Under the pieces are notes generated by a model that saw only the letters and a program-made list of their open reading frames with translations, ran no database searches and had not been told where the DNA came from. Position numbers and translations under genes: made by a program. From Mantamonas sphyraenae STR306 (lineage: Eukaryota; Protista; CRuMs), in assembly GCA_026936335.1 (NCBI GenBank), contig JAPMXV010000063.1, positions 161,578 through 225,577 on the forward strand: DNA of 64,000 bases, given 5' to 3'. Numbering within the stretch: position 1 is the first letter of the stretch; every line of letters begins with the position of its first letter. This document shows positions 21,182-34,099 of the stretch, piece by piece.

Positions 21182-23033
21182 ATGTCCGACGAGTACACCT
21201 TTGAGGACTTGCAGCAACGCATCGACGACCTCTCCAACGAGGACCCGTCCACTCTGTTCGAACTCACGGACCTGTTGGGACGTGGCTCCTACGGCTCCGT
21301 GTACAAGGCCCGCTACATCCCGACCTCGGAAATCGTGGCCATCAAGATGATTTCCCTCGAGGAGGGCGAGGAAGGCATTGAAGACATCAAAAAGGAGATC
21401 GACATCCTGCGCCAGTGCGACTCGGAGTACATCGTTCGCTACCGCGGCTCTTTCTTCAAAGGCTCCAATCTGTGGGTGCGTTACGGGCCCGAGCGTGCAA
21501 ATCTCCCTCCCGCTCCACACAAAATGACCCGGAACTCACACGGACATGCGCCACGCCTTGGATGGCCATGGCAACCAAAACCACACCTATCGCGGCTCCG
21601 CCGTGCCACACGTCCGCTGTGTGCTTCTCTTCTTTGTTCCACAGATTGCCATGGAGTACTGCGGCGGAGGGTCTTGCTCGGACTTGGTGCAGATCCTGGA
21701 GGGCCCCATGAGCGAGGACGCGATTGCGCTGATCTGCAGGGACGCGCTGCGAGGCCTGCAGTATCTGCACGAGCAGAAGAAGATCCATCGAGACATCAAA
21801 GGCGGCAACATCATCTTGACCGAGGAAGGCCGTGTGAAGCTGGCCGACTTTGGCGTGTCTGCACAGCTGGTCAACACGTTTAGCAAGCGAAACACATTCA
21901 TTGGGACGCCATTCTGGATGGCGCCGGAAGTGTTGCAAGAGTCGATGTACGACGGCAAGAGCGACGTGTGGTCGCTGGGCATCACTGCCATCGAGTTGGC
22001 CGAAGTGATTCCTCCCAAGGCCAACATCCATCCTATGCGCGTGATTTTTATGATCCCACGCGACCCGCCGCCCACCCTTACGGAGCCGCGCAAGTGGAGT
22101 GTCACCTTTCGTGACTTTCTCAGCAAGTGTTTGGTGAAGGATCCGAAGCGTCGGCCCACTGCGGAGCAGCTGCTGCGCCACAAGTTTGTCACCGACGTCA
22201 AGTCGTACGGCGTGATTGTGGATGAGATCGAACGCATGCGTGCGGTGGTGGAGGAGCGTGGTTACGGTCTGCAGGACGGTGAGGCGGACGAGGGCGAAGG
22301 CTTGGACGAGGGAGACCCGTCGGGCACCATGGTGCTCAACACAACCAAAACCGACGGAAGCGAGGACGTGTTTGGCACAGCGGTCAACTATGGCACGTCG
22401 CGGTTTGGGACGAGCGGCAGCGAAGACGAAGTGCCCGCGTTCATCGCCAACATCCGGCAGAACAAGGGGGCCAGCCGTACCTACGACGAGGAGGAGGATG
22501 AGGACGAGGAAGACGAGGAAGAGGACGAAGACAGCGACTTTTTCGGGGGAGGCACAGTGCGCATGACCTCGTCGGCGTCGTCGGGCAACACAGAGAAGCC
22601 GTCGTTTCTGCAGCGACTGCAAGCAAACGGAGGCTCATCGGCGTCGCTTGTGGCACCGACCACACCCAAAAAGGGCATTGCCGAGGATGCGTCCAAGGGA
22701 TTTGGGCTGGACGACAACCTGTATGGGATCTACCAGAAGGGCTCAACCATCGGCATCCCATTCCTCAACCTGACCTACCTGAGTGCAGAAAACATGCTGG
22801 CGACGGACTATGAACAGAACAACCTGACGTCGACCATCAACGAGCTGTCCAGCAACTACGAGGAGCTGGCTGAGGAGTTGAACGTGACACCGATGATCAG
22901 CAACCTGCTCAAAACGCTTGCGTATCACCAGCGTCGGCAGGAGGAGATCCCCATGACGGCCAAGGAGATGGACCAAAACCGACGAGTGGTCACAGAGCTG
23001 ACGACGGCTCTCAAGACGGTGTACAGGGTGTGA
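21182..23033 (+). CDS. STE20/GCK-family (MST-like) Ser/Thr kinase; 2 predicted exons
   Basis: GRGSYGSVYKA, HRDIKGGNI, DFGVSAQL, RNTFIGTPFWMAPEV, IHPMRVIFMIP. Confidence 0.93.
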
Positions 23034-24447: not shown

Positions 24448-24595
24448 CGCGGTTTCTTGTTCATTCCTGCCGAGCCGATTCTTCATCTTCTTACTGCCGT
24501 TGCGCAAACAGCGCGCCGGCGTATGTCTGGTTCTGGATAGTTACCTTGTTGCGATATGTGATGCTTCTGTTGTTGTTTAACACGTACGTGCTGGC

Positions 24596-27500
24596 TCAAG
24601 TGGCCTTGTCCTTGCTCTTGGCCCATGTGAGGCTGGCTGGGCGAGTGCCACGATCCATCTGCGTAAGGAATGCAATCAGAATGTTCTCACACGCAGATGT
24701 GTCTCGATCCTTGATGATTGGCCAGCCTGATGCATGCTGAAGTGTCGCTAGCATGGCTGCACCTGCCGTTCGGTCGTTGTACGACACGCTGCAGGCGCAC
24801 TTGACGCTGCGACCAAACTTGTTGATGTTCGAGCCGACTTCAGCGACACCCTGGACCTCGTACCCGCAGTTGGAGCAGCACTTTGTTGTGCGGTGCTCGT
24901 TCACGAGGAAGACCGGGGAGCTGCGTGCCAGGTCGTCCCTCACCGCAGCGTCATTTGCACATCCGCGTCTCCAGCCCTGCGTGTTGCCCATCACATACAC
25001 AATCACGCCTGAGTTGTCACCTGGTTTGTTTCCCGACAGCTCCTTTGCGGCTCGTTCAACGTTTGACTGCAGCCTCTGTGTCTCCTTCATGCGGCTCAGG
25101 TTTACGATGATGCGTCGCTGCCGATCCTCCTCGCTGCCGTGAGAGCGCGTTTGGTGGCCCCGCTGGCCTGTCAGATGTTGTCTCTTGGCATGAGTGTGCA
25201 CAGGCACATTGACCGCTTCGGCGTACACTTGCGCACCCCTCATCGTGGACTCCAATGGTTTGCTGATTTGCCAGTGCGTTTTCCAGCTGCCCGTGTCCGC
25301 CGTGGCCACCACAATGCTCTCGAGGGCCTTCTTGTGATTCTGCAGCTCCTTGGTCGTGGGTGGTCGTGTTTGGCTTGGTTTGATGACGCCTGTGAATACG
25401 CTCGCTTGGGGTAGGCAGCGCACAAACCAACTGGGCAATAGTTCTTCCAGCTCCTTCGGCACCCCACATAGCACGCTCAACTTCACACAGAACTCCGCCA
25501 GTTTGCTCTTCGACCAGTTTGTGGGTACGTGGTGTGCAATCCATCCGAGAGAACGCGACTCAGGGAGCACGACGTCCGCGAGCGTCAGCCCAAACTTCTT
25601 CACCTGGGCCTTGGTCATCACCACGCCTGCGACATGGCTGTCATATCTGAGGATGCGTTTGACGGAACCACACACCTGCACAGTGCCGGTGGCGTGTGCG
25701 AGGACATGGCCAGGAAGTACACTCAGTTGAGGTAGCAACAACGCCGCGAGGGCCACACGGCGGTGCCAGAACGACGTGAGCTGGGCATCTTGCTCGTCGT
25801 CCACGTCGCCCTCATGTTCCTCTTCGTCCAGCTTGTGCATCGTTTGCGCCACCCAGGGAGCCGAACGATGCAGCGTTGCCGAGTGGGTCTCCAACCATTC
25901 CCTGGCCGGCTCGAGGCCATCTTTGGGAAGGGTGGACAGCGTGTGCAACAGAGTACTCGTGCCGACTTCTGTGGTATCGATATGCGACAGCAGCCGGTGG
26001 ATCAGTGATGGGGTGAAGTTCACGCATGAACAGAGAGGCCGCTCACTTGGCATACCACGGCTTCCTCCCTTTTTCAGTCTGTTGGAAATGTACTGTGCTG
26101 CATGGTTGGTCAGCTCGGTCCGAGGTGCGTCCATGGTGTTGGCGAAAAAAGTGCTCTTGGACACGCCCTTGCACACCAGCTTCTTGGCCAGGTTCCTCAC
26201 CCTCGAACCCAAGGCCTCGTCCATCTCGCTGTCTGTGATCCACTTGGTCACCTCGTCGGGAATGCCATCGTCCACACGCTGGTGTTTCTGGCCAGCTTCC
26301 GCTTCCGCGGGCTCTGGCGAGCCCGAATCCATCTCTGATTTCTCGCTGCGCTCCCGCTTGCGCTCGTTGTGCACGCCTGTGCGCGTCTTTTGCGATGTCT
26401 TGGAACGATGCCGTGTGCTCCGTGATGTCTTGCCCTTCTGTGTGTGCTTGGCTGCTTGCTTCTTGCGTTGTTTTGGTTTCCGGGGGGGGGGTTTGAACCA
26501 GAATCGCTTGAAGTCGTCACTGTGGCCCAGTGTGCGGCGCACGCGTCCCATCCCGACGCCATACACCTTGCAGATGGTCAGAATGTTTTGGTTCTTGGTC
26601 AGCTCAGAGTCAAAGCACCCGACAAGCGCGTCAAGGGCGATGTCGCGCTCGATCTTGCTGGCAATTCCAGCCACCACGCCGTCAAACTCGTTTGACACCT
26701 CGATTGACATCCAGGGTGCGAGTTTCAGCGCCATTGTCATCTCCTTCAGTTCACCCCTCTCCCCAAGGGCAGCCACGAGGCTCTCATGTGTCATCAACTC
26801 GTGAAGAAGGGGGTCCGCGTCATTCTCGTCGTCTTCGGACAACGATGACGATGATGATGACGACGACGACGATGATGATGATGACGACGACGACGACGAC
26901 GACTCCCTTGATGCGTATGAGCGTGTTCGTCGCTGTTGAAAAACATCCGGGACCAGCAATCGCATCGCGTCTTGATCCTCCGTGGCCACCTGCTGCCATG
27001 GCTGGGCGAAGCCTGGTTTGCACTCGATGGCCAACTCCTTGATGTCGCCCGTATGGAGGTCGGCCAGGGAGCCACCCAGCTTCTTGAACAGCTTCCGTTG
27101 CGTAGCAGGTTCGCTCAGAAGTCCCAAGGCGTAATTACCCTGGGCAGCATCTTGCAAGGCGCGCCTGATGAGGCCGATCCCCATGTTCAACAGCACGTTG
27201 AAGACGACCGCGCAACACTCCATGAACAGTTCAACAGACTTGTCATCAGCGAGCTGTTGAGCTGTGTACGGTTTTCGGCGTTTCTGCTTGCCTCTCGGGC
27301 GCAGCGTTACTGACTTCAATCCACCCGCATCGTCCAGTACATCAGCGGGTTCAGGAAGACCATTGACCAGACTGTGTGCCTGAGCGTACACAACGGCCCG
27401 TTGGATGCCCGCTTTTGCCTTCGCTTCTGCCTGCAGCAGCAATTCGTGCTGCTGATCTGATTTCTGCCTGGACACCTTTTCGCTCTCCAACTCGCGCACC

Positions 27501-29407
27501 AGCCCCTGAAGATGGTGCTCTTCCACCAGTTTCTTCGCTTTCATCTTGGATGAGCTGTCCATCTTGTCCTGTGTCAGCATACTCTTCAGCTCGAGCTGTG
27601 CCTCGTGCGCGGCCGCGTCAAACCAAAAAAAGCGAGCGGCAAGGTGCTCGTACAGCGCAATGCCCACGTCATCTTGCCTCATCTTCCTCGTGCAGCTCAC
27701 TTGCACGTATGGCAGGTCGTCCTGTGTGCGAAGTTCTTTGACCCGCACGCCTTTGAGAAGATGCCCGTGATCTCCCACACTCTCACGCATCCAGTCGAGC
27801 TCTGCTTCCATATCACCCTTGCTCATGCGCACGCAAAACGTTCCGTCTGCGATCTTCTCGCTGGCAACCACTCCTTGCGTGCTGCATTGTTGCGCTTGGA
27901 GCAGTTTGCGCGTGGTTTTCAGAGCTGTGTTCCTTTTCTTTGCCCGAGGGCCTTGAAAGCGGGAGGCGTCGACTGTAAACAGGATGCGGTGCAGTTCATC
28001 GTCCTCACGCGCACCCACGTGTGCCGCAATGCATACACCTGCGTCATCCCTAACCACCATGAGCTGCCCGAAAATCTGGATCGTGCGGCTCACCCGCAGC
28101 AACTGAAACTTCTTCAGCATGTCCGGCATAGTGGTGTGCTTTTCGTGATACAGCTGCGATCGACACCATCTGTAGAACGTCCATCGCTCCGTACTACCCA
28201 TTTCACTGAGCGCTTCCGAGAATGCTTCCACACCGGCATCTTGCGGTGGGCTGTCCAACTGCCCTCTTCGCTTGCCACGGAACACTGCCTGCAGACTGCA
28301 ACCAGTGTAGCGCGCGACATCATGCAGGTGTGCCCTCAGCCGCCTCTTTCCCGAGGACGAGAACTCCTCAAACCTCGCCCTCAGTTTTGACTCCTTCCGA
28401 GTCGTCGATGATGCAGCGCTCACAATGGTGTCCAAGCTGGTCACACGCACGATGTCAAACTCCTGGTCGCCGAAACACTGGGGCTCTGGCTGCTGGGGTG
28501 ATAGCACGAGTTGGCGGCGGCCGTCGATGAGTTCGTGCACGCCACAACAACGTAGCATAGCATGACTGTACGTGGACAGCTGGAACGTGTCGTCGTTGTT
28601 AGGAACGTGGTCTGTCAGATCCAGCAGTGTGCTTGCGGACGCCACAGCGTGTCGAGTGGCCTGCGAGAGAAAAGCTGCCGTGCCATTGGACCTTACGAAA
28701 AGTTTTGGTGCTGCAATGCCACTCAAGCTTCGACAGTGGTCCGAGTCTATGCCCACGTCCACCAACATGGCCGTGTTCTTGAACACAGCGAACACAACCG
28801 CTTGGAACGAATGCACCAACTGTTCAGCCTCCAGACCCTTGCCGGCATCCTCAAACGCTTTGGATGTCAAGCAAAGCACGCACTTTTCCTCCAGGCCACG
28901 CTGCACCTGCCCACGTACATCCCTTTCCACCTTTTTGCCTTTGCGCACCTTGTGCGAACCGAAGTCGTCCAGATCCACAAACCCGTCCATATCGACTTCC
29001 ACGAACGCATGTTTCAACGCAGACATGAATTTGACGTACAACTGCCTGTCTTTCCCCCTTGGGGTGTCTGTGTCATCAATCTTGCCGCGTGCAGCGACGA
29101 CCGAACGCAGCCACTCGACTGTGTGCGCAGGGTCCTTCGCGTGGACTAACAACGACATCATCTTGGCCACGGAGGGGTAGATCTCGGTTGCTACGACCAC
29201 CAGTGCGTGCTTGAACACCTCTTGCAACCGCGTGGCCATCTCCTCGACTGCTTTCACCAAGCGCTGGCCCCAAGCCTCGACTGTCCTCAACCGCTCGTCG
29301 TCACTTTTGGCATAGTGAAGCCGCGGAGGAAAGAAGAGGATCCCGTCTGTGGGCAACGTTGGTGTGAGTGCATTAGCCCAGGGAACGGCAAACGGGAAAA
29401 TGGTCAT
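24596..29407 (-). CDS. Very large Fanzor/TnpB-family RNA-guided endonuclease candidate (Fanzor1-like), 1603 aa, single uninterrupted ORF
   Basis: The C-terminal ~240 aa carry RuvC-I VVATADTG (D at 25295-25297), VIVYVMGN, RuvC-II VFLVNEHRTTKCCSNCG with Glu directly before the zinc finger, a second Cys pair KCAC, RuvC-III DRDTSACENI (24681-24709) and a terminal RPASL. Confidence 0.85.
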   Translation of the reverse strand: MTIFPFAVPWANALTPTLPTDGILFFPPRLHYAKSDDERLRTVEAWGQRLVKAVEEMATRLQEVFKHALVVVATEIYPSVAKMMSLLVHAKDPAHTVEWLRSVVAARGKIDDTDTPRGKDRQLYVKFMSALKHAFVEVDMDGFVDLDDFGSHKVRKGKKVERDVRGQVQRGLEEKCVLCLTSKAFEDAGKGLEAEQLVHSFQAVVFAVFKNTAMLVDVGIDSDHCRSLSGIAAPKLFVRSNGTAAFLSQATRHAVASASTLLDLTDHVPNNDDTFQLSTYSHAMLRCCGVHELIDGRRQLVLSPQQPEPQCFGDQEFDIVRVTSLDTIVSAASSTTRKESKLRARFEEFSSSGKRRLRAHLHDVARYTGCSLQAVFRGKRRGQLDSPPQDAGVEAFSEALSEMGSTERWTFYRWCRSQLYHEKHTTMPDMLKKFQLLRVSRTIQIFGQLMVVRDDAGVCIAAHVGAREDDELHRILFTVDASRFQGPRAKKRNTALKTTRKLLQAQQCSTQGVVASEKIADGTFCVRMSKGDMEAELDWMRESVGDHGHLLKGVRVKELRTQDDLPYVQVSCTRKMRQDDVGIALYEHLAARFFWFDAAAHEAQLELKSMLTQDKMDSSSKMKAKKLVEEHHLQGLVRELESEKVSRQKSDQQHELLLQAEAKAKAGIQRAVVYAQAHSLVNGLPEPADVLDDAGGLKSVTLRPRGKQKRRKPYTAQQLADDKSVELFMECCAVVFNVLLNMGIGLIRRALQDAAQGNYALGLLSEPATQRKLFKKLGGSLADLHTGDIKELAIECKPGFAQPWQQVATEDQDAMRLLVPDVFQQRRTRSYASRESSSSSSSSSSSSSSSSSSSSLSEDDENDADPLLHELMTHESLVAALGERGELKEMTMALKLAPWMSIEVSNEFDGVVAGIASKIERDIALDALVGCFDSELTKNQNILTICKVYGVGMGRVRRTLGHSDDFKRFWFKPPPRKPKQRKKQAAKHTQKGKTSRSTRHRSKTSQKTRTGVHNERKRERSEKSEMDSGSPEPAEAEAGQKHQRVDDGIPDEVTKWITDSEMDEALGSRVRNLAKKLVCKGVSKSTFFANTMDAPRTELTNHAAQYISNRLKKGGSRGMPSERPLCSCVNFTPSLIHRLLSHIDTTEVGTSTLLHTLSTLPKDGLEPAREWLETHSATLHRSAPWVAQTMHKLDEEEHEGDVDDEQDAQLTSFWHRRVALAALLLPQLSVLPGHVLAHATGTVQVCGSVKRILRYDSHVAGVVMTKAQVKKFGLTLADVVLPESRSLGWIAHHVPTNWSKSKLAEFCVKLSVLCGVPKELEELLPSWFVRCLPQASVFTGVIKPSQTRPPTTKELQNHKKALESIVVATADTGSWKTHWQISKPLESTMRGAQVYAEAVNVPVHTHAKRQHLTGQRGHQTRSHGSEEDRQRRIIVNLSRMKETQRLQSNVERAAKELSGNKPGDNSGVIVYVMGNTQGWRRGCANDAAVRDDLARSSPVFLVNEHRTTKCCSNCGYEVQGVAEVGSNINKFGRSVKCACSVSYNDRTAGAAMLATLQHASGWPIIKDRDTSACENILIAFLTQMDRGTRPASLTWAKSKDKAT

Positions 29408-30150
29408 TGTGCCCTACAGAGAAACCCAAGGTCCACACCAATCACAGTCACGGCAATATCGGCATCGTTGTACTGAGTCTTGTATATGTCGTGCGAAACG
29501 GCTCCCTTGGCTGCCGTTTCCAGTTTGTCCAAGTACGTTGCCCCGGTCTTCAGCTGTGGACGCACCGCAACCCCACCAGCAGCGAGGCTCAATCCCCAAA
29601 GCCGCGACTTCTGCTTGTGCAACGTGCGCGGAGCGTCATCAAGGAACAATCCATCTTGCAGCATCGTCAGGTGCAGAAGGCCCTGTTCGTCCTCGTCGCG
29701 AGTGACAGAAACAACCGATGGATGCGACAGTGCGGCCTGCACCACGGTGTCCTCAACCGTTTCCGCCTTGCTGCTCTTCTTGTCCCCCGTGTCGGTGTCA
29801 CGCTCTTCCCTGATCGGGCACACACTCTCCAGATCTTTGCACAATTGCTTTAGGTCCTTTGCAGCCTCTTTGTACTCGTCGGGCAGGTGGCCAGCGAGTC
29901 TACGGGTAAATTCAACCACACGCATGCTCTCCAGGGACGTCGGGTTGCGGTTACAAGAGAGCTGCGTCTTGCACACCTTGTCGACGGCGTCCAGACCCTT
30001 GACGGCGGCATCTACTTCCTCTTCCGGCATGTCCGCATAGTGCAAACGAAGTCCAAGCACTGCGTTGTGCAGGCGCTCCGTGAGGCGAAGGCGCGATTTG
30101 CCCTTCCCTCGTTTGTTTCTGCTGTTTGAGCTCGAAGATGATGAAGACAT
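29404..30150 (-). CDS. Upstream ORF (248 aa) overlapping the Fanzor start by ATGA; possibly the frameshifted N-terminus of the same protein
   Basis: Intronless [21 protein letters not shown]...; ends in AVTVIGVDLGFLCRAQ*, a RuvC/RNase H beta1-type motif. Confidence 0.6.
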   Translation of the reverse strand: MSSSSSSSNSRNKRGKGKSRLRLTERLHNAVLGLRLHYADMPEEEVDAAVKGLDAVDKVCKTQLSCNRNPTSLESMRVVEFTRRLAGHLPDEYKEAAKDLKQLCKDLESVCPIREERDTDTGDKKSSKAETVEDTVVQAALSHPSVVSVTRDEDEQGLLHLTMLQDGLFLDDAPRTLHKQKSRLWGLSLAAGGVAVRPQLKTGATYLDKLETAAKGAVSHDIYKTQYNDADIAVTVIGVDLGFLCRAQ

Positions 30151-30401
30151 AGTCCAGGACAAGGGAAAGTAGTTGAAGAATCTCTGTCGTTCTCTCCTTG
30201 GGACCGTGCTTGCAATGCCCTCTTCCAAACCAATTTGGTGTGTCACGCCGCGCCCTCACATTGCCAAAGGAGGTTATCGTCGCTCGTGAAAGCACAGCAT
30301 GGAAATTGAACATGGTATATGTGCATGTGGATGGTGTCCTACGGACAAAAACTTCTTCATTGCCCCTCAATCGAAACGATTCGCTCAAACGAATCATCTT
30401 C

Positions 30402-31854
30402 TCACAGGCCATCGACAATGGAAAACACCTGTGCGTAGACGTCGTGCACCGCTTGCTTGCAAAAGAGAAAGTCCATGTGTTCGTAGGTGGGCACCTCAAA
30501 GAGCTGGAGGTTGGGCTTGGCCGGCTTGCCACCCGTGATGGCACGTACAACTGCAGCCGTGTCCGGCAGTGGGTCTTGTTCGCCGTAGAACAAAGCCATG
30601 GGCAGGTCGATGGTTGTGAGGTCGTAGGTGGGAGGCTCTGGGCTTCGGTAGGCGAGCATGTTTGCGTGCCTGCTGCCAAAGTCGTAGCGTGTGAACGAGC
30701 CCGACTGCATGAGCTGAAACCAATGGTGGACATTCTTGACAGAAGTGCCACTGTACAGGTGTGCGGCGTAGAGGTCCATGCGGGCCGGGTCGAGGTTGTG
30801 GCTGCGCCAGCCAAACAACACGCTGAAGGCCTTGCGGATGACCGCTGTGTACACTTTGCGAGGCAAAATACCACGGCAAAGACCGGCAGCAGACAACATG
30901 CGACGGTTGCCAAACAGGGCCGTCATCCAGTCCCAGGAAGCACCGGCCATTCTGTTGACCAGGGGATTGTGCAGCTCGTTGACGATGGCAGCTGGGGCCA
31001 TGGCCACAAAGAGGTCCACCTGCGCTGCCAGCTCAGGCATGGTGCTGAAAGCGGCGAATCCGAGCGATGTCCCCTGAGAGAAGCCCACATAGAGCAGGCG
31101 ACTGCCCCCGCTTGTTTCAAGCGCGTACTGCAGCATCTCCGGCAGATCAATCAGTGCCATCTCGTCCATGGAAAAGTCCCAGAACCGCTCGTCGTCGATG
31201 GAGAGAGTTTCATGCCTGCGGCTGCACTCGTTGCCGCGTGTGTTGCCTGCAATTGTCGCCAGCCCGCCGAAAACCCCCCGCCGAAGTCAGTTCTTTCTTC
31301 TCACGGGCCTCGCCCACGCGTTCATGTGTGAACGCGGGTGGGAAGAAAAACGTGGCAAACAGGCTCACTGTGTTTGTGTTTGTTCACACTCGGCACTTAC
31401 CCAGCCACACTTCGTGTCCGCGCTGGGCGAATTGGAACGCCAGCGACTCGCGGTTGCAGACCCAGGTGGCCGCGCTCTGGAAGCAGCCATGCTGCAGAAA
31501 CACCACGCGATGATGGTTGCGAGTCACATGCGCGGGGGGAAGAATGCGTTGCACTCCCAGCAGGTATCCGTCCGAGGTGCGCACTGTGTGCTCCTCGCAC
31601 TGGAAGCCCATTGCTTCCACCAGCTGGGCCACAGACAGGTCCAGCAACGACTCGACGCTGTTCTTGCTCCGTGAGCGCTTGTGTTGCCCTCTCCTCCTAC
31701 GCACACGTCCGTACAGAACGACCGCGTGTGTCAACAACGTCGTCACGGGCGTCCACACCGCCACATGGATGGCACGGAAGAGCAAGGCCACCACAAAGGC
31801 GGCGTATGTGCTGACCACATTGTGTAGCACTGTCAGCAAAGCCACCGTGCCCAT
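30402..31854 (-). CDS. Lysosomal acid lipase/steryl ester hydrolase-like alpha/beta hydrolase (LIPA/Tgl1/Yeh family); 2 predicted exons
   Basis: EEHTVRTSDGYLL, VVFLQHG, EVWLG|NTRGN, FWDFSMDEMALIDLP, nucleophile YVGFSQG, catalytic His YEHMDF. Confidence 0.92.
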
Positions 31855-31876
31855 GGCGTTTTGAAGAGAATTAGTT

Positions 31877-34099
31877 TCACTGGATTGCGCAAGCCTTGCT
31901 CTCGTCTGCACCGCCGCCCTTTGTCCCTCCACCATTCTCCTGTTTCTCTTCCTTTGCATCCAGCTGCTTGCTAAGCAACTCGTTTTGTGACTTGAGCGAC
32001 TCCAGTTCGTCGTGCATCTCTGCCTTGTCCTGGCCGGGCCGTTTTCGGCGCGGGGTCTGCGATGTCGTCTCACCGTCGCCACCTGTGCTCGACACGCCTG
32101 CCTGGGCGTTGGCTGCGTCCACACTTGCGTTGATACGGTCCACATGCTTCTGGTTCTCTTCTTCCAGGCGTGTGACGCGTGCCCGCAGTTGACGGATCAA
32201 CTCGTCCCGATCCTTCACTGCTGTCTCCATGCCTTTGCTGTACGCTTCCATCTCCTTCTGGAACATCTCTCGTGTTTGTTCCACCTCCTCCTGCAGCCGT
32301 TCGATCTCGTCTTCCTTCTCGTCCAGCTCGTCGTGCAGTTCCTCCGCCTCCTCCATCCACTCCTGCGCCGTCTTGACCTCCTCCGGCTCGTTTTCCATTG
32401 CACCTGTGCCCTCTTCGTCGTCGCTGCTGTCTCGTGCCTCCTGTTCCTTCTTGGCCTTGCGCGCTGCCCGTTCCGCCGCTCGTTTTTCCTTGTCCTGCGC
32501 AAGCACCATGGACGTCAGGGGCTGGTTGACCGTCGAGCCGCACTCAATCAGCAGATAGATGATTTCTGTGGCCTTGCATGCGGCAGCGAGTTGCAGCGGC
32601 GTCTTGCCCTCTGGATTGGGCATGACAAAGTCTGCGCCAGCGCGGATCAACAGCTTCACACATTCTTCGTGATTGCTGGGCACGGCAAGGTGCAACGGTG
32701 TGTATCCACTGTCGTTTCGTGCGTTGACGTCCACATCGCATGTCAGCAGGAACGACAGAGTTTCTTTGTGGCCCTCCTGAGCGGCCAAATGCAAGGCAGT
32801 CAGGCCCTTGGGGTCGCCTGTGCGCACTGCCACCATTCCAGTGGCCATGAGCACCTTGCAGCATTCCGTGTGACCGTGTGCCGCAGCCACGTGAAGCGCA
32901 ATGCGTCCGTCTTTGTCCTCCAGATTCACCTTTGCACGTGTGGTTTCAAACGCTCTGTTGGGATGGTTGACTGGGTGTGTGCGTGTGTGGGTGTGCGTGT
33001 GTCAGCTGGCTGTGTGCTGTGGACGTGGGTGGTGGCGTTGCGACGTACAAATGATGTTCATCAGGTTGGCGTGGCCCTCGCGTGCACACAGGTGCAGGCA
33101 GGTCTGTTGGTTGACGTCCTGAGCATAAACCTCTGCGCCGACGTCGAGCAGCAGATCGACAGTCTCTGTGTTGTTGGCCTTGGCGGCAAGGTGCAGCGGC
33201 CGCGTGCCGTGCTCGTCCTCCACGTTGCCATTGCCGTTGTTGCGCAGCAGCCACTGGGCACAGGCGAAATCCTGTTCCTGACAGGCCTTGAGCAACACCT
33301 TGTCCACCTTGGTGTCCTTGATGATGGTCGCACCGGCAGCAAGCAAGGCTCGCACGCAGCCCACGTGCTCAAACTCCAGTGCGTAGTGCAGCGCATTGTT
33401 CTCGAATGTGTCCAGGGCATGCACATCTGCGCCTGCACCCAACAGCAGGTCCACAATCTCTGCATAGCCACCCTCGGCGGCGTTGTGCAGGGCTGTGCGT
33501 TTCTCCTTGTTGCTGGCCACCTCCACCTCTGTGCCCTGCATCACCACCAGCAGCTTCACCACGTCTGTGTGTCCTCCTTTGCACGCCATAGCCAAAGGAG
33601 TCTGTACGTGTGCGCGTGTTGCGTTGGTATCGTCGTGTACGGCATGGTGGCCCGTGTCAGCCTGTGCCCCTCTGGTGCCCAAAAACGGCTACCTCTCTCT
33701 GCGCGGCTGCTGCGCCACACGGGGCATGGAAGGGACACACGCCACACATGAAAGCGCCCAAACAGGCCAAAGCCAGCGTAGGGCGGTAGGAACACGCGTG
33801 TTACCCACCTCGTTGTTCTGGTCGACGGCGTTGACGTCTGCACGGTACTCGATCAGCGTCGTCACCGCCTTGGAGGCGCCCACCTTGGCTGCATAGTGCA
33901 GTGCCGTGGTATCCACGCCGTCCCGTTGGTTCGGATTCTCGCCCTTCTTCAGCAGCTCCTCCAATCCAGCAGCGTCGTCGTTGCGGGCGAGGTACATCAT
34001 CTTTGCGCTGATGTCCTCGGGCCTCATCAAGGCTTCCACCACGACCACCTTGGTCTTGATCTTGCGCTTCTTCTTGCCCGTCTTCTTCTTGCTGGGCAT
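31877..34099 (-). CDS. Ankyrin-repeat protein with C-terminal coiled coil and CaaX box (CAIQ); 3 predicted exons
   Basis: Many TALH/TPLH ankyrin repeats, an E-rich coiled coil and terminal KACAIQ*. Confidence 0.88.

Follow-up and report, generated by a model that had tools for sequence, protein, structure and literature searches.

Closest described systems

Published Fanzors have an average length of 620 aa and reach about 800 aa (PMC10530073, PMC10711439). Together with TnpB, they are described by the motif D-X(125,275)-[TS]-[TS]-X-X-[C4 zinc finger]-X(5,50)-RD (Bao and Jurka, PMC3627910), while a further Fanzor hallmark is a catalytic Glu six residues ahead of the zinc finger (PMC13565253). 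A TDG motif in the WED domain is regarded as a Fanzor1 feature (PMC10711439), and the occurrence of Fanzor1 within mariner elements is already known (PMC3627910).

The locus described here lies in a window of 64,000 nucleotides from the genome of Mantamonas sphyraenae (25,061,354 bases in 78 contigs, the longest of 751,365 bases; PMC10492846). Like the Fanzor1 proteins SpuFz1, PpFz1 and GtFz1, its product carries a C-terminal RuvC, a Glu just before the zinc finger and a terminal RP motif, and the spacing of 65 residues between the catalytic E and D is shared with SpuFz1 (E541, D606). A conserved non-coding segment from the stop codon to the right end, TA at the ends and the existence of elements with and without transposase are further common traits. 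In contrast to Fanzor1 enzymes of about 600-800 aa, however, the Mantamonas protein is predicted to comprise approximately 1827 aa and to include an N-terminal FEN-type nuclease, and in a quick tree the giant Fanzors form a long-branched clade of their own. The proposal of the sequence-only reading that this is an undescribed, oversized Fanzor class agrees with the published size range. Our literature search yielded no description of a Fanzor above about 800 aa or with a fused 5' nuclease, although the supplements of Jiang et al. may still list one, and no paper on a Fanzor in Mantamonas, on Fanzor1 combined with XPG or on a TnpB and PIN-like fusion; none of the fusion terms was present in the supplements of Saito et al.

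Among Fanzor1-bearing Tc1/mariner elements, PUl-1, PUl-4 and PGv-1 (PMC3627910) resemble the Mantamonas family in having a mariner-type transposase upstream in some copies, Fanzor-only derivatives, TA duplications and terminal inverted repeats (TIRs). The Mantamonas TIRs, on the other hand, are imperfect and none is demonstrable in the studied copy, the cargo is a giant fusion, and PGv-1 possesses a separate GIY-YIG gene but no fused 5' nuclease. Exact 3' ends, 5' truncations and variable short duplications are also shared with the Fanzor1 elements CRe-1/2/3 of Chlamydomonas; yet these are of Helitron2 type, while the transposase linked to the Mantamonas copies is of IS630/Tc1 type and duplications occur in a minority of copies.

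Gene structure

The sequence-only reading had reported an uninterrupted 4.8-kb open reading frame (ORF), and this frame of 1603 codons (29407..24596, minus strand) as well as all motifs quoted from it were confirmed. It is not a chance frame, since its RuvC triad D1371/E1504/D1569 (ORF numbering, to which 224 is added for the spliced protein) is identical in 20 of 20 paralogs spanning 18-78% identity, and dN/dS versus the nearest paralog amounts to 0.12-0.39 over the ORF length. The protein length of 1603 aa, in contrast, has to be revised, because the ATG of this ORF falls within a predicted spliceosomal phase-1 GT..AG intron of 71 nt (29417-29347, minus strand), the position of which is common to 10 of the 11 copies examined. 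In the same proportion of copies (10/11), the upstream frame stops at a common motif, after which comes T|GT; where copies are close, the downstream frame restarts after the AG, thereby completing a split Tyr codon.

As predicted from these features, the gene consists of two exons with a start at 30150 and encodes a product of about 1827 aa (1827 aa as computed for the spliced product from ATG 30150). Exon 1 (29418..30150, minus strand; 244 codons plus one base) encodes a basic N-terminus, a further domain and the first strand of a PIN/FEN domain (VDLG, D240), while exon 2 (24596..29346, minus strand) adds 1583 codons up to the stop. The paralog termed C29, which aligns from approximately 30370 to 24492, has the large ORF joined to the preceding one in a single frame; this copy reads through because its intron is 78 nt long and contains no stop. 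The possibility that the ORF start reflects a frameshift or an error of assembly was ruled out, the break being the conserved intron, as was a second RuvC at the exon junction, where the sequence represents the first strand of the PIN domain.

C-terminal Fanzor1-like nuclease

The end of a Fanzor1-like WED domain, the RuvC domain and the zinc finger were assigned to 24596..25750 (minus strand) by conservation and structure matches, with the catalytic codons at 25297-25295 (D), 24898-24896 (E) and 24703-24701 (D). An AlphaFold model of the C-terminus has a mean pLDDT of 60, which is higher across RuvC. Foldseek returned SpuFz1 and PpFz1 as best matches of this model (E 3e-5 to 2e-4, with 3e-5 for SpuFz1), which supports the originally proposed Fanzor identity, and comparison with 24 Cas12/TnpB/Fanzor entries gave Z-scores of 13.7-8.2; in the model, the secondary-structure positions of the triad (strand, end of strand, start of helix) fit RuvC. 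In direct profile searches against the PDB, the giant Fanzor matched ApmFz2 at a weak E of 9e-4, and the sole Pfam match of the 1603-codon ORF is a weak TNB zinc ribbon (E 0.0036). A profile built from the nearest database proteins matches the giant Fanzor with 99.4% probability and reaches E 6e-46 for SpuFz1 versus E 4e-8 for ApmFz2. The C-terminus is closer to Fanzor1 than to Fanzor2 or TnpB.

At the motif level, D1371 is followed after 135 residues by TT, a CxxC at 1511, a CxC as second pair and then RD. This second zinc knuckle, which is CxC in the studied copy in distinction to Fanzor1, is CxxC in several paralogs. E1504 precedes C1511 at the hallmark position, a placement that is invariant in 20 paralogs. 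A conserved TDG-like column was not found in the profile alignment, while the preceding L-x-P motif does align; the YDS that had been likened to the TDG wedge motif is not conserved in paralogs and is misaligned with the Fanzor1 TDG column, so that this likeness does not hold. The middle region (25750..28259, minus strand) is composed of a beta-rich linker, long helices, a serine run (~26835-26905) and a basic tract. It should contain REC and WED, but neither was placed with confidence, as model confidence is low ahead of RuvC and the global profile alignment is poor there, these domains being too diverged from Fanzor1 to align. Since no TDG motif was recognised and REC/WED are unplaced, the protein is named Fanzor1-like and not canonical Fanzor1, and for the same reason we infer its RNA guidance. 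Residue conservation suggests that the giant Fanzor may be catalytically active. The locus is eukaryotic, considering its intron and the protein kinase and lipase genes next to it.

N-terminal FEN-type 5' nuclease domain

According to fold comparison and motif content, much of the N-terminus is a FEN1/XPG/Exo1-type 5' nuclease with intact acidic motifs, and nuclease activity is predicted. This intron-split PIN domain (28260..29440, minus strand) was placed by fold matches and by its acidic motifs, which in spliced numbering are D240, E299, E417-A-E419, D445-S-D447 and D490. The first 360 residues of exon 2 hold an EAE/SAD/EAD motif, an invariant DSD and a later invariant D (11 copies), while the N-terminal Asp of the domain is located at the end of exon 1. 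Searches and folds were run exon by exon, and the PIN model (pLDDT 69) therefore lacks its first strand. Compared with 48,161 chains, the model gave exclusively FEN-superfamily members at ranks 1-15, comprising Exo1, T5 FEN, T4 RNase H, bacterial FEN, GEN1, XRN1, ExoIX, FEN1, XPG and Pol I, with Z 8.0-5.1 over 180-290 aligned residues, where the individual scores of 5-8 are middling; best was Exo1 (Z 8.0 across 222 residues). No match was obtained for the PIN model in Foldseek at E<=0.001, for the PIN profile against PDB sequences or for the studied PIN in the Atlas search. The best Pfam score is a PF02739 match in one paralog (E 0.004), and dN/dS of the domain is 0.13-0.17 in three paralog pairs. 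The FEN-type assignment is thus based on the unanimous top ranks, the motifs, the PF02739 match in one paralog and these dN/dS values. Hence, of the earlier statement that the N-terminus consists of unexplained extra domains, the extra domain stands, while "unexplained" no longer applies to the part that matches FEN/XPG-type 5' nucleases by fold; about 800 middle residues and most of exon 1 carry no domain assignment.

In its fold and its order of acidic motifs (D, D/E, EAE or EAD, DSD, G-x-D), the domain resembles the FEN-like PIN group with FEN1/XPG/Exo1/GEN1, T5 FEN, T4 RNase H and XRN (PMC5499597). It differs in being too diverged to reach Pfam cut-offs, in not being assignable to a subfamily and in its fusion with an RNA-guided nuclease that is the cargo of a transposon. 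Two other roles for it were weighed against the end processing proposed below. FEN-family domains act on RNA too, and the PIN domain might serve as a 5'-3' exoribonuclease or RNase H-like enzyme, trimming the transcript to the mature omegaRNA or clearing R-loops, with RuvC alone cutting DNA. The top fold matches include XRN1, Rat1 and T4 RNase H (Z 6.2, 4.7 and 7.5, respectively), and as the omegaRNA would be the 3'-terminal part of a transcription unit of 5.7 kb, it requires 5' processing, which is established for Fanzors and TnpB. Ordinary Fanzor1 systems, however, mature their omegaRNA without such a domain, the best single fold match is the DNA enzyme Exo1, and the fusions outside Mantamonas bear a GCDD..GIG helix-hairpin motif that is typical of DNA-acting FEN/XPG enzymes. 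Overall, an RNA substrate appears unlikely.

Even less probable is a dual-nuclease effector in which the PIN domain makes one of two DNA cuts, as a flap cut at the R-loop junction, instead of acting as a resection helper. It is established that structure-specific 5' nucleases cut junctions of single strand and duplex as presented by an R-loop, and both active sites are under selection; but the Fanzor1 RuvC needs no help to cut both strands (PMC11423790), and no full-protein structure places the PIN domain near an R-loop. We consider this arrangement very doubtful.

Fusions outside M. sphyraenae

The closest protein stems from a transcriptome of Mantamonas plastica, and the longer isoform of this protein starts with the same PIN motifs; a second species hence transcribes the fusion. 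A FEN-type domain is also carried by three further, unrelated Fanzor1 contigs. It is present together with Fanzor1 in a single ORF of 1224 aa (contig P0048), joined via a predicted in-frame intron of 55 nt to give about 1449 aa (L069), or located in ORF pieces immediately upstream of Fanzor1 (L068). The PIN profile of these contigs matches the Mantamonas PIN weakly (E 3e-4). Since the outside fusions cluster with ordinary Fanzor1 and apart from the Mantamonas set (95% SH-aLRT in a quick tree with long branches), two origins of the fusion architecture are possible from these sequences. A word-index search for long homologs found none, and a search of viral contigs gave no match.

Transposon family in the M. 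sphyraenae genome

When the genome was searched for paralogs, as the sequence-only reading had proposed, the PIN profile recovered at least 27 loci, almost all of which precede a Fanzor RuvC by about 4 kb, while the C-terminal profile matched approximately 65 places, most of them within frames of more than 1100 codons; 13 copies were read near full length. An IS630/Tc1 DDE_3 transposase is encoded 1.6-2.9 kb upstream on the same strand in five of 27 PIN-Fanzor copies, and 19 transposase matches exist genome-wide. None was found in the studied copy or elsewhere on its contig, and the studied copy is non-autonomous because it has no transposase within. Copy pairs with 94.5-99.9% identity sit in differing right flanks. 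Six other copies have significant TA-ended, imperfect TIRs of 28 bp, observed in one subfamily and a single additional copy (19-21 of 28 positions matching, reached by at most 1 of 200 shuffles). In the studied copy, which has a right end with TA and a truncated left end, the TIR is not above chance (16/28).

These observations also bear on whether the gene might be a domesticated, immobile host gene. It has an intron, evolves under purifying selection, is intergenic between housekeeping-type genes and has a single close paralog with 74% identity. Such a fate is nevertheless highly improbable in view of the at least 27 dispersed loci, near-identical copies with different flanks, sharp ends and linked transposases, as well as a 3' segment that is 98% identical in the two closest copies.

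About 30 loci matched by the C-terminal profile have no PIN match (e.g. C14:90386, C40:129948, C17:164188, C59:153838); they contain giant Fanzor-like frames of 1600-2050 codons, and several have a DDE_3 transposase approximately 7 kb upstream. In a subfamily of about ten copies (C51:191800-198800; C29b/C29), the PIN-equivalent region is degenerate and the DSD lost, while the frame is open over more than 1700 codons. The C29 copy has a gene on one side and, on the other, a paralog of this gene that is reduced to its 3' half, as if a deletion or rearrangement had removed the 5' half at insertion. At C49:562678-562791 and C43:72334-72444, the left region holds an inverted short piece resembling the 3' end of another Fanzor, and the left end of these copies approximates the reverse complement of the right end of another subfamily. 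A 5'-truncated copy at C51:218742-219014 matches the 3' terminus of the C10 copy with 100% identity over 383 bp and is possibly a stand-alone omegaRNA locus.

Ends and candidate omegaRNA of the studied copy

Downstream of the stop codon, a conserved non-coding segment of 104 nt (24492..24595, minus strand) shares 98% identity with the C29 copy and terminates abruptly in TA at 24492. Its core motif GGTAACTATCCAGAACC (~24545-24529, minus strand) is conserved across subfamilies: it does not vary within the wider subfamily, and a second one with about 20% protein identity has it in slightly altered form. The segment folds no better than shuffles (z 0.0-0.5), shows no convincing covariation and has no match in Rfam. 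Because of this folding result, it is an omegaRNA candidate by position and conservation only. The adjacent right flank (24477..24491, minus strand) is the predicted guide, a role assumed by analogy with known Fanzor1 loci; other genomic targets of this guide are limited to 3-mismatch matches in purine-rich repeats.

At the opposite side, the left end and 5' non-coding region (30151..30393, minus strand) show homology to the C29 copy from near 30373 and carry the motif TTCGTTTGAGCG, which other copies also have at their left ends. A 9-bp direct repeat, AGAAGATGA (30402-30394, minus strand), directly precedes this motif and is identical to the first nine bases of the right flank (24491-24483). 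It overlaps the last base of the stop codon of the upstream neighbour, an intron-containing lysosomal-type lipase gene (30402-32145; Abhydro_lipase, Abhydrolase_1). By eye, the left end of the studied copy is without approximately ten first bases that are present at other left ends. Beyond the right end, a protein kinase gene is found at 21546-23033 on the plus strand (Pkinase E 2.5e-46). GC skew is positive (0.15-0.46) for more than 20 kb (39000-62000) toward the contig end, which is also the end of the window.

The shape of the ends raises the question of mobilisation without a transposase, whereby the ribonucleoprotein would cut a new site, the 5' nuclease would process it and the element would be copied starting at its right end, with 5' truncations of variable extent and duplications of 5-14 bp as the outcome. 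Right ends are exact and left ends variable, an adjacent transposase is found in just five of 27 copies, and 5-12 bases of right-flank sequence recur at the truncated left ends of the studied copy, C17 and C54, a pattern like that of Fanzor1-bearing CRe elements (PMC3627910). Most copies, however, lack such a duplication, complete TA-ended TIRs of the kind that Tc1 transposition should give are present in several, the genome contains 19 transposase matches, and a flank-derived guide alone cannot point to an unrelated new site. This route is therefore judged rather improbable.

Synonymous divergence from C29 is 1.35 across the PIN region and falls to about 0.2 in the last 850 bp, starting with RuvC. 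This points to a recent exchange of 3' sequence among copies, with constraint at the RNA level as an alternative for the low 3' value. As such a fall is expected from recombination between copies, it is counted in favour of homing. No empty target site was found in the haploid assembly, and the genome contains no ghost elements of the studied subfamily.

Proposed mechanism

Taking these data together, the studied element is best read as a non-autonomous IS630/Tc1-mariner-type transposon with a FEN-Fanzor1-like cargo that would combine RNA-guided homing with built-in end processing (probability roughly 0.55). At the sequence level, this reading builds on the presence of both domains, their intact acidic residues, purifying selection, the sharp and conserved right end and the transposase linkage in five relatives. 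Points that weigh against it are the poor folding and missing covariation of the candidate omegaRNA, the middling PIN Z-scores without a Foldseek match, the unplaced REC/WED lobe and TDG motif, the lack of a significant TIR in the studied copy and of an empty target site in the assembly, and the degenerate PIN region of the C51/C29b subfamily despite its long open frames. An omegaRNA would be made from the 3' segment plus approximately 15 nt of right flank, as in known Fanzors, and would guide RuvC to an element-free site, such as an empty allele or an excision site, to be cut there. The tethered 5' nuclease might then trim a 5' overhang or resect the cut ends to 3' single strands, a step newly proposed here. 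Ends processed in this way would channel repair into recombination with the copy that still holds the element, thereby restoring or spreading it, while movement to new sites would depend on a Tc1-type transposase acting in trans. Restorative homing has been shown for TnpB and IscB (PMC13565253).

More tentatively, and with somewhat less than even odds, the protein may be regarded as a single-chain RNA-guided nuclease and resection enzyme that forces homology-directed repair, with this architecture having arisen at least twice in eukaryotic Fanzor1-like lineages.

Significance

We know of homing only for bacterial TnpB and IscB, and what Fanzors do for eukaryotic transposons is an open question. 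Eukaryotic cells tend toward end joining of breaks, and the target would be destroyed in this way. A 5' nuclease built into the Fanzor would answer this end-joining problem, which is testable with one point mutant, and the DSD-less C51/C29b subfamily offers an internal control for PIN function. With at least 27 copies, several subfamilies and defined ends, the family is also usable for choosing guides. The giant fusion would more than double the known size range of Fanzors and add CRuMs to their hosts, and it would be a natural counterpart of engineered Cas-exonuclease fusions.
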